DNA from: Zygnema circumcarinatum SAG 698-1b
Taxonomy: Eukaryota > Plantae > Zygnematophyceae
NCBI GenBank assembly: GCA_037447605.1
Contig: CM074819.1
Coordinates: forward strand, 744,001-808,000
Reading direction: 5' to 3'
DNA: 64,000 bases
Both the position numbers and the translations under genes were made by a program. The notes beneath the pieces are model-generated. The model saw nothing but the letters and a program-made list of their open reading frames with translations, was not told the origin of the DNA and ran no database searches. Below, piece by piece: positions 663 through 45,730 of this stretch; within the stretch, counting starts at the first letter, position 1, and each line of letters starts with the position of its first letter.

Positions 663-714
663 CCAATCACGACATGCCACGTAAGCACATTATAGCGTGG
701 CAGACTGTGATTGG
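663..714. promoter_or_regulatory. Inverted pair of CCAAT-N9-CCACG (ERSE-like) elements upstream of MDL
   Basis: CCAATcacgacatgCCACG at 663-681, a 14-nt spacer, then CGTGGcagactgtgATTGG at 696-714; about 240 bp upstream of the MDL ATG. Confidence 0.6.
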
Positions 715-815
715 TCGACCGGAAGGTCGCTCAAGGATGAAAGTGAGCGAAACTGGAAGCGAAACCACGAGGGCATCGCCATCGAATTTTCATTGGATGA
801 TTATGGCGACCATTT

Positions 816-1003
816 CCTCGTGGTTCCCCATGATGATGATGTTGTCCATGTACATTTGATGGCATCATCGCCATCGTGAGATCAATGCCACATCCCCCCT
901 ACGATTCAATCCGAGCCATAGTAATAGAATGTGGCATTGATCTCACGATGGCGATGCCATTAAATGTACATGGACAATATCATCAACATGGGGAACCACG
1001 AGG
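816..1003. repeat. Fold-back formed by two inverted copies of a ~100-bp dispersed repeat
   Basis: Arm 816-893 (cctcgtggttccccatg...gagatcaatgccacat) is nearly the reverse complement of 929-1003, with a 35-nt loop. More copies at ~1455-1545, ~1817-1915, ~2068-2165 and ~58611-58700. Confidence 0.85.
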
Positions 1004-2799
1004 GACTGGCCGCCATAGTAATAGGATACCATCCAATGGAAATTCGCCACGTCACCATATTGTCCGCGTGGTGAGTCCCCACAGGACAATGCTCGGCTAT
1101 GCACACTACTGCTACTGCTAATGCGAGTCATCGTGTTGTACTTGGAAGGCCTAGAACAAGAAGAACAATGCTTCAGGGTCGTCGCCACAGAAGCGCAGAG
1201 TGGCAACCTTTCATCACAACTTAGTTGGTTGTCTTGCAAAATTACTCTCTGTATAGCCGTGTGGAACTAATTGGTCCCTGACTCCAACATAAAATTTACC
1301 TACAGGGATCGGGTTCAAGTAACGGCTCTCTTGTTCAGTCATTATATTATCAAGAACTGAGGATTGGCATTGGCCTCATGACAGCGAAGCCATCACCATG
1401 ATACCTTCTTTTGTTGATACTCGATAAGTCTACAAGACCACAAGGACATAGAATTGGCATTGCTCTCAATACGGCGATGATGCCCTCAATGGAACATGGA
1501 CAAAGTCAACATGGGGAACCACGAAGAACCAACCGCTCACGAAGGACCTAAGGACGACAGAAAAGAGCCATGAGCTGGCCTTTGCTCCACAACATCGGCT
1601 CCTGCTTGTTGCTTCTGGGCTCGATATCGCTAAATCGCATCGTATCGACGGAGGCCATTATCGTATCGTAGCACAACGTATCGCATCGCGTAATATCGCA
1701 GCGTATCGTGGTGGCCATGTCCGGGCCGCCGCACATCGGCGACCTTCGCGGCTGCTTCTAGGGAGGGCTGCGATGTTGCGCCTAGGCGTAGCTTTCAACT
1801 CCTAGCTTTTTTTTTTGTCCTTAGGCCCTTTGCGACCAGTTCCTCGTGGTTCCCCATGATGATGATGTTGTCCATGTACATTGATGGCCTTGCCATCGTG
1901 AGATCAAAGCCACATCTTCCATTCCCTTTACAATCATACGCAATAAATCTAGCATTTTAAACAATAATATAACATCGTGAAACAATGAATAGCATAAAAA
2001 AAATAAAAAATCGCACATGTGAAATCCTGAGTAACGAGGACCGTTTTCCGCTCTTAGTTTCTTTCTTTTGTGCTTTGGTCCTTTGCGACCCGTCCCTCGT
2101 AGTTCCCCATGCTGCTTTTGTCCATGTACATTTGATGGCCTCGCCATCGTGAGTTCAATACCATTTTTCCACATTTTGGTTCTGGATTCTTCCAAAGATT
2201 TTTGCGGCCAACCGCGCCCTATGGCTTTTCCTGGAAGCCAATATGATTTTTTGAATTCTTTGTACGGCTCAGCAACGGATCGAGCTGGCGGCCTCTGATT
2301 GGCGCAGTCGTCATCCAACGCGGCTCGACGCCATCGTACGAGCCATACGAACGTACAGCTTTGTGCGGTCCATCCGCCGCTTTGGACCGCCGCGATGTTG
2401 CGGCGCCACCCAGGCAAAACGGGGTCGCAAATCGCAGTCCAGATTCCGTACTCCGCTTCTGCCGAAATATATAGCAAACAAGCATTAACAATGTACTAGT
2501 TCTTTCAATTTGCAACTTCCACTGTCAGCGTACTGGTTCTTGGACGTCGTTACAGCTCGGTTCACCAAACCACAAGCTCGAATCCGTACTCCGCTACTGC
2601 CGGCCTTGCTCATACGCAAAACAGGTGCGATGTACGAGTTCTAGCCATTTGCCACCTGTCCGCGTCCTGGCACCTGGACGTTCTTGGTGAAGGAGACAAG
2701 TCAGGAGTGCCCACATAAGGAGAGAGGCAAGAGTACAGCAGGAAGCAAGCAGCAAACAGAGATTTAACTCGTACATGTAAATCTATTATGCCAGAGCAG

Positions 2800-44600: not shown

Positions 44601-45505
44601 CTCAAAGGTAGAGGGAGAGGGACAGGGAGAGAGAGAGGACGAGGGAGAGGGAGAGGGAGAAAGAGAGGAAGATCAGACTACGTCAGCAAGCACACAGCTT
44701 TTCGAATTTTGCTGTTACGAACGCAGGAAGGTAGCTATGATTTTTTTTACTTTTGATGATTTCTCCATTCTTTATTGGATCAAACAGCCAGTTGATATAT
44801 TTCAGCAAGTAATAGGATGTACGAACATGTATGAAACAGATAATGAATGTTGTTTGTTGAAGAAAATGGAAAAATATAAAATGTACCTGGAAGAAACAAA
44901 GCGTCCCGAAAACTATTCGCAAGCGCCACGCCTCTATTCATTTCTATGAGCGCCGCTGCCTCTGCTTCTGCGACAGCTGCTGTAGCTTCAGAGCGAATGC
45001 AAAACCCTGGTTGCCTGGCCACTTTGGAGCCGCTCTTCACTGCAAAAATAGCAAAGTATTAAAAAATAGAAATAATAGAGACAGCTTTCTCCTAAAGCTC
45101 ACCCTTTCATGATCTCCAGCTGGTTTCTGTAACGACAATGACAAAAATATGCAAACAGTCGACAAAAAACTGGAACTCCCTTCGCGCATAAATGGCTTCA
45201 AAATCTGCACTTTTTCAGGAAGCCAATGTTTGTTTGTTTGCTGCGGATGAAAAGGACGCCTTCATAGTTGCAATCAGGGTGAGTCGACTCTCACTCCGGC
45301 TCTGCGGTTGAGCAGCAGCATGCACTAGAAAAAGCAAGATACGATCCAATGGTGCAAGGAATGAGCAGAAAGCATGACTGAGCTCACATTGGCGAGCTGT
45401 AATCCTCTGACTCCGCCGCAAAATCAAGCGCTCGGCAGGATGCAGGGCCACTGCTCCAGCTCCTCCTGCTCCTGCTGCTGCTGCTGCAGACATTGCAGGC
45501 GCCAT
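41695..45505 (-). CDS. LDH: L-lactate dehydrogenase, 9 exons, with predicted N-terminal extension
   Basis: Exons 45388-45505 (tentative), 44887-45039, 44392-44480 (VGVGSVG), 44093-44179, 43509-43679 (VTAGARQ), 43169-43281 (SNPVD), 42786-42911 ([16 protein letters not shown]), 42173-42365 (KGYTNWAIG), 41695-41892. Confidence 0.92.
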
Positions 45506-45678
45506 GGATGGCTGCTTGCAGGCTTGCAGGCGATGGGATATGTATGTATGGCTGGATGGATGGATAGATGGATGGACGGATGGCCCAATGGCAGCATGCA
45601 GCATGAAGCAGGAAGGGGAGGTGAGGGTAGGCAGCCCTTGCGAGGAAGCTCGTCCTGCTTCCCTCCCTTGAGGACCAA

Positions 45679-45730
45679 CCAATGGGAGCATCCACGTGTC
45701 CAATTTTGACACGTGGCGATTTGTAATTGA
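45679..45730. promoter_or_regulatory. Degenerate inverted ERSE-like pair upstream of LDH
   Basis: CCAAT-N8-CCACG at 45679-45696, a 15-nt spacer, then CGTGG-N9-ATTGA at 45712-45730; about 175 bp upstream of the tentative ATG. Confidence 0.45.

Follow-up and report, generated by a model that had tools for sequence, protein, structure and literature searches.

A stretch of 64,000 nucleotides from Zygnema circumcarinatum SAG 698-1b (GCA_037447605.1, contig CM074819.1, positions 744,001 to 808,000 of the forward strand; hereafter the window, numbered from its first letter) contains many copies of a short motif in which the pentamers CCAAT and CCACG are exactly nine bases apart (CCAAT-N9-CCACG, the half-site), often arranged as a mirror-image pair (a dyad). 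We think it somewhat probable that this motif is a fixed-spacing module of the proximal promoters of ordinary genes, recognised by NF-Y together with an ACGT-binding bZIP protein, often paired and partly carried by repeats. It is positioned 180-420 bp before start codons and, in the case of both dyads for which RNA was examined, near mRNA 5' ends. We infer the binding of NF-Y and bZIP proteins, and an effect on transcription, from elements of the same form in other organisms.

The exact half-site occurs 12 times in the window when both strands are counted, while dinucleotide-preserving shuffles contain a mean of 0.09 copies and never more than one. The first-pass annotation of this DNA was therefore right about the enrichment, but its count of 10 copies (11 with a duplicate beside an assembly gap) was too low. 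Spacing is strict: across the series from N0 to N30, only N9 is enriched, with its 12 copies against at most two at any other spacing. The heptamer GCCACGT is itself more frequent than expected (32 copies vs 7.6), and in 17 of those 32 the fixed distance separates it from a CCAAT-like box. A chance origin of the half-sites and dyads is ruled out by the shuffles.

To describe the motif, we aligned 16 half-sites, with each repeat family represented once and one-mismatch partners included. The first base after CCAAT (+1) is C or G in 12 of them (C in five) and the second (+2) is a purine in 15, while G directly precedes and T directly follows CCACG in 15 each; the two bases ahead of that G are mostly pyrimidines. 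The half-site is a unit of about 20 bases, CCAAT-S-R-N6-GCCACGT (S, C or G; R, purine), and conservation in the alignment is focused at the CCAAT and GCCACGT positions. The spacers had previously been described as unrelated to one another, a description which these shared bases refute. Both ends of the unit correspond to well-characterised types of site. The intact CCAAT pentamer has the flanks preferred by NF-Y, for which C at +1 and a purine at +2 are common to mammals and plants (PMC6843132), and GCCACGT provides the ACGT core and the flanks of the plant G-box and abscisic acid (ABA)-responsive element (ABRE).

In a dyad, two half-sites face each other (CCAAT-N9-CCACG, a gap of 14-16 bases, CGTGG-N9-ATTGG). 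Two dyads, 663-714 and 32654-32707, are exact in both halves, and shuffles contain none. We also ran a relaxed scan in which as many as three of the 20 specified bases could mismatch and the gap could have any length between 12 and 18 bases. It returned five dyads (at 663, 1033, 8376, 23594 and 32654), all of which have gaps of 14-16, against a mean of 0.05 per window in block shuffles. The first-pass annotation had listed five dyads with two of them perfect, and all five, including those two, are present where it placed them; the dyad at 1033 is absent from its list. It had also given the five a common geometry, which is true of the layout and the gaps, but the dyads at 8376, 23594 and 45679 are imperfect, and the left spacer of the last has eight bases instead of nine. 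Spacers are somewhat more alike within a dyad (4.75 of nine bases) than between different dyads (3.58 of nine). The outer flanks are not mirrored, with matches at only 1-6 of 20 positions, so the symmetry ends at the edges of the motif, and a long decayed palindrome can be rejected as the source of the dyads. No dyad touches or adjoins an assembly gap.

If the motif works as its parts suggest, the half-site would be a composite cis-element joining an NF-Y-type CCAAT box to a site of the G-box, ABRE or endoplasmic reticulum (ER) stress response element (ERSE) type, GCCACGT, exactly nine bases away. Each half would hold a single NF-Y trimer together with a single bZIP dimer, as at ERSE. In Zygnema, the half-sites would serve as a proximal-promoter module, often in head-to-head pairs whose CCAAT boxes are on the outside and whose inner ACGT sites are separated by 14-16 bases, and such a symmetric pair may be cooperative and independent of orientation. 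Repeats may have helped to spread the module.

The closest known system is ERSE, where NF-Y binds CCAAT and ATF6/XBP1 (in plants, bZIP28) binds CCACG (PMC3645738). The algal half-site is identical in sequence to mammalian ERSE-I (CCAAT-N9-CCACG) and comparable to the plant version, pERSE (CCAAT-N10-CACG), and it keeps the 9-base spacing strictly. Its GCCACGT ending also matches the Arabidopsis ERSE words, which are CCAA-N9-GCCA and CCAA-N12-ACGT (PMC3645738, PMC5499772). All 12 exact sites have the sequence that defines ERSE-I, and the module may work in a similar way. Unlike ERSE-I and pERSE, however, the algal sites precede genes which do not encode ER chaperones, are very dense, have an informative spacer and often form head-to-head pairs. 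Other known systems are less similar. The human CHOP promoter has two ERSEs in reversed orientation at -103 to -76 (PMC6581940), and they resemble the algal dyad in being two facing units within a proximal promoter; however, the CHOP pair occupies 28 bp with overlapping units, while the algal dyad occupies 52-54 bp with 14-16 bases between its CCACG blocks. The Arabidopsis FT Block E enhancer combines a CCAAT box with a G-box, and NF-Y ChIP (chromatin immunoprecipitation) peaks are enriched for elements containing G-boxes (PMC13067676), but the Block E boxes are 2 bp apart in a single enhancer and form neither a genome-wide N9 module nor a dyad. Our literature search on palindromic or inverted double ERSEs and on promoter motifs of Zygnematophyceae turned up nothing relevant except the CHOP pair.

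The genes beside the motif set it apart from the classical element. Dyads 1, 3 and 5 are upstream of MDL, HMA1 and LDH, as the first-pass annotation had stated (distances in Table 1), and it was equally correct that the linked genes are not classical unfolded protein response (UPR) targets. ERSE-I is found in the promoters of ER chaperones and other UPR genes, yet the window contains no ER chaperone gene: the neighbours are a MIF-like gene, HMA1, a protein kinase, LDH and PTPA. We therefore do not file the module as a UPR regulon. The module could still mark a single regulon of another kind, or one that includes ER stress, with ABA/desiccation, light or the clock as the signal and a signal-activated bZIP of the bZIP28/60, ABF, HY5 or GBF type acting with NF-Y. 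GCCACGT is the ABRE/G-box core, CCACGTCA (present in three sites) resembles the plant UPR element UPRE (PMC3645738), and the ERSE layout is stress-specific in both mammals and Arabidopsis (PMC5499772). Half-sites before PTPA in two other streptophytes, described below, may hint at the same. On the other hand, the neighbours, among them a plastid metal ATPase, share no common theme, the density of about 11 loci in 64 kb is very high, and the kinase gene beside dyad 4 is expressed in all four RNA runs with no recorded stress treatment. We consider the single-regulon explanation unlikely.

Turning to position, dyad 3 has TATA-like runs about 15-45 bp away on its gene side. We identified no divergent gene beside dyads 1, 3 and 5, and at dyad 4 the right-hand neighbour, an RRM/UHM-type gene whose 3' end faces the dyad (minus strand, stop near 32996), has the same orientation as the kinase gene, so this dyad is not in a bidirectional promoter. 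Dyad 2 is 10 bp ahead of the ATG of a putative open reading frame (ORF) at 8439-8846, and directly after the dyad, inside this ORF, about six units of 51 nt are repeated in tandem (8476-8815). No Pfam families were found in the ORFs near dyad 2 or near the half-sites at 24265 and 49125.

RNA data are available for two dyads. For dyad 4, we used contigs from four runs of the same organism, identified as RNA by their spliced contigs. Contigs of the kinase 5' untranslated region (UTR) continue from 31770 as far as 32172 in two runs and 32264 in one, and another run has a further contig at 32413-32587. These contigs end 67-480 bp from the dyad, which places the start of the kinase mRNA within 480 bp of it and possibly at about 70 bp. 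Contigs of the RRM-type gene end at 32710, the edge of the dyad, in one run. Dyad 4 thus occupies a very short interval, with one gene's 3' end on one side and the next gene's 5' end on the other. For dyad 1, we used a word index of RNA runs, six of which come from two studies (P8 and P9, whose other runs X15 and X16 gave spliced contigs). The stretch 317-662 is bounded by the end of exon 1 on one side and the edge of the dyad on the other, and the runs contain 0.81-0.88 of 32 words sampled from it, where DNA would be expected to give about 1.0. The missing 12-19% of words put the 5' end of the MDL mRNA near 600-625, which we estimate to be about 35-60 bp from the dyad (within about 15 bp), assuming that the missing words are those at the dyad end. 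In animal promoters, the NF-Y CCAAT box is typically at about -60 to -100 from the transcription start.

The location of dyad 4 exactly between two genes, with the upstream gene's contig stopping at its edge in one run, would also suit a role other than that of a promoter, i.e., a boundary or terminator between tandem genes. A related possibility is that other proteins are involved, such as one large dimeric factor recognising the 20 bases of each half; in its favour, the spacer is informative along its whole length. However, both conserved blocks match well-known site types at the spacing used for joint binding (PMC3645738), and no gene end was identified beside dyads 1, 3 or 5, so we give these explanations very little credence.

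Some copies of the half-site are carried by repeats or duplicated. The sites at 47107, 47665 and 48556 belong to one local repeat family, conserved over 130-340 bp, in which the motif is on the palindromic GCCACGTGGC. This region (46400-48850) is a cluster of at least three repeat copies in mixed orientation, part of which (47718-48255) is self-inverted, and the borders of the copies have telomere-like CCCTAAA runs and ACGAT short repeats. At the 1033 dyad, the CCAAT box and spacer fall in the outer end of a fold-back element at 783-1046 that resembles a miniature inverted-repeat transposable element (MITE). The inner part of this fold-back recurs at about 1451-1546, 1793-1916, 2045-2163 and 58607-58698, and its outer ends contain mirror-image CCAAT-N9 sequences. 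The remaining case is a duplication: the blocks 24019-25295 and 25316-26592 match at 100% over their 1277 bp and flank a run of N at 25306-25315; a 10-N gap comes after each of them, and the second block ends at its N run. The half-site at 25562 is therefore a copy of the one at 24265 and not an independent site, as the first-pass annotation had implied by its term gap duplicate. The pair of blocks is probably a scaffolding artefact or mis-assembly, or else a very recent tandem duplication, and it inflates the count of anything within the blocks.

Plant MITEs and fold-back transposons can spread transcription-factor sites, so one must ask whether all of the sites are functionless relics of such mobile elements, with their own promoter boxes, and whether the symmetry of the dyads comes from palindromic elements. 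The three half-sites in one repeat family, the 1033 site at the end of a fold-back and spacer types which recur at unrelated loci (CACAGNCTG and GGGACTC, with up to eight of nine spacer bases identical) all favour this explanation. However, the five gene-near dyads lack repeat flanks: comparing 250 bp of flank among these dyads and the solitary sites revealed no homology, while flanks are homologous for 47107/47665/48556 and ambiguous for 1033. This rules out a single recent repeat family of which the five dyads would be termini or centres; dyads as repeat termini were one of the outcomes that the first-pass annotation had named as refuting its proposal. Also against the relic explanation are the mirror symmetry that stops at the motif edges, the concentration of conservation on the two boxes, and the positions upstream of genes and near mRNA 5' ends. 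We regard the relic explanation as very unlikely for the sites as a whole.

Table 1. Half-sites, dyads and related features, with positions in the window unless a contig is named; distances are from site to ATG.
Feature	Position	Strand	Sequence and geometry	Context	Distance (bp)
Dyad 1	663-714		Both halves exact; 14-base gap	MDL (MIF/D-DT-like) gene, minus strand, ATG 427	236
Dyad 2	8376-8429		Right half CCAAC; 16-base gap		
Dyad 3	23594-23646		One mismatch per half (CTAAT left, GTCACG right); 15-base gap	HMA1, minus strand, ATG 23238	356
Dyad 4	32654-32707		Both halves exact; 16-base gap	Protein-kinase gene, minus strand, ATG 31701	953
Dyad 5	45679-45730		Left spacer N8, right half TCAAT; 15-base gap	LDH, minus strand, ATG 45265 (Pfam Ldh_1_N)	414
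Sixth dyad	1033-1085		Left half exact, right ACAGG replaces ATTGG; two mismatches; 15-base gap		
Half-site	24265-24283	+	Exact, solitary	CATGCA-rich tract after it; locus transcribed	
Half-site	25562-25580	+	Copy of 24265	Beyond N gap; not independent	
Half-site	29169-29187	+	One mismatch (CCATT)	Within kinase-gene intron 29139-29481, shown by spliced RNA contigs	
Half-site	47107-47125	-	Exact; core is a palindromic G-box	In repeat copy	
Half-site	47665-47683	+	Exact	Second copy of 47107 repeat	
Half-site	48556-48574	-	Exact	Third copy of 47107 repeat	
Half-site pair	49037-49143	+	Same orientation, 88 bp apart; 49037 one mismatch, 49125 exact		
Half-site	61203-61221	+	One mismatch (CCGAT)	Upstream of intronless PTPA gene 59836-61020, minus strand, ATG 61020	183
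Fold-back (MITE-like) palindrome	783-1046		Self-inverted; family arms about 70-130 bp		
Animal dyad	L005:5549-5601; also L002, L008, L010, L013, L016, L018, L022, L023 and others		15-base gap	Endoplasmin/GRP94	

Several results weigh against a proximal-promoter module. Six of the 11 loci have no assigned adjacent gene start: dyad 2, the 1033 dyad, 24265, 29169 (which is intronic), the repeat copies at 47-49 kb and the 49037/49125 pair. In two of the four runs, RNA contigs continuous with the 3' UTR of the upstream gene extend across dyad 4 itself and reach about 32485. The transcription starts are only bracketed, by the ends of assembled contigs and by shares of words, and are below the precision of mapping. 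The recurring spacer types could reflect common descent from mobile elements or the presence of a third factor. Lastly, all of this was tested on one 64-kb window only.

The same mirror pair exists in an animal. We scanned metagenome contigs from JGI (Joint Genome Institute) for exact dyads, accepting any gap of 12-18 bases, and found 26 loci. Four of these, on GC-rich or bacterial-type contigs, resemble chance matches or hairpins, and the other 22 are on animal-type contigs of 39-45% GC, where the gap is 15 in 21 contigs and 14 in one. Eleven of the animal contigs were aligned and represent one alignable locus, and in nine animal contigs the exons 0.6-1.6 kb downstream of the dyad encode N-terminal peptide motifs of endoplasmin/GRP94 (the L005 exon matches solved endoplasmin structures with E = 5.6e-19). 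All four pentamers are invariant in 11 of 11 diverged sequences, with a mean column identity of 76%, and a TTTAA-type box is present about 35 bp downstream of the dyad. The geometry of the mirror pair, as judged from this alignment, is conserved at a classical UPR target gene in an animal.

The animal and algal dyads are identical in layout, with CCAAT-N9-CCACG, a 15-base gap and CGTGG-N9-ATTGG. They differ in that the animal dyad is at a single locus, before a classical UPR target, and in that its CCACG is followed by A or G instead of T, so the ACGT core is lacking. Because the same dyad is found at animal endoplasmin, the paired layout is one that is used at a classical ERSE target gene. 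The first-pass annotation had proposed an undescribed composite NF-Y/bZIP promoter element, possibly peculiar to this lineage. The sequence, spacing and upstream position that it described are sound, but the dyad geometry is not a peculiarity of the lineage, given the endoplasmin/GRP94 dyad, and a reversed ERSE pair had already been described in human CHOP (PMC6581940). What looks lineage-specific is the abundance of the motif and its use at ordinary genes. Our literature search found no paper on the layout of the animal endoplasmin dyad, nor any that addresses the cooperation of two ERSE complexes at a set distance, and the endoplasmin mirror pair would make such cooperation directly testable.

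Abundance was compared with that in more distant streptophytes, using about 136 kb around PTPA orthologues from Closterium, Chara, Marchantia, Riccia, Physcomitrium, Arabidopsis and one Logan sample. This sequence contains one exact half-site and eight with one mismatch, which is the level expected by chance, against 12 exact copies in the 64-kb Zygnema window. The abundance of the half-site therefore looks specific to Zygnema or its near relatives, although the sample is small. PTPA has its best protein matches in Closterium, bryophytes and vascular plants (the best is 66% identical), as would fit a zygnematophycean alga. In Marchantia paleacea, an exact half-site (L029:9654-9672) precedes PTPA by about 330-350 bp, and in Closterium a one-mismatch half-site (L027:9550-9570) precedes it by 450 bp. 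Together with the Zygnema site, these could represent gene-specific conservation, which may or may not be meaningful.

Some other features of the window should be noted. Tracts rich in CATGCA and ACACATGC, similar to RY elements, follow the half-sites at 24265 (24284-24330) and 32654 (32774-32900), and because both loci have such tracts, the RNA contigs of the 24265 locus fit partly onto the 32654 locus (32654-32675). Very long low-complexity purine/pyrimidine tracts of the GAGGGA, GGGGGA and CTCCCT types are present at 16800-21700, 24700-25100, 27300-27900, 37600-38020 and 53680-54220; they are partly within the HMA1 gene region and result in strong strand skews. Scanning the entire window against Rfam produced no match, and a tRNA scan gave one odd tRNA-like match (13369-13443) which is unrelated to the half-sites, so we rejected the motif as the promoter of a known small-RNA gene. 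A reading of 3245-13441 as an L1 element is unsupported by the ORFs examined there.

To our knowledge, almost nothing is known about the grammar of promoters in those algae that are nearest to land plants. We tentatively suggest, while thinking it rather doubtful, that each dyad of 52-54 bp forms a discrete nucleoprotein unit, in which two outer NF-Y trimers are each coupled to an inner bZIP dimer on ACGT/CCACG, in a geometry fixed by the proteins themselves, and that in this algal lineage a stress element has been turned into the default organiser of proximal promoters, with fold-back repeats delivering it to new genes. A protein-fixed geometry would explain why the same layout is found at the animal endoplasmin promoter. 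If the promoter module is confirmed, it would mark many ordinary promoters in Zygnema and so provide a sequence tag for transcription starts. It would also be a compact promoter part, independent of orientation, with which to design transgenes for zygnematophycean algae, and a natural example of a stress element that has become a general housekeeping module.

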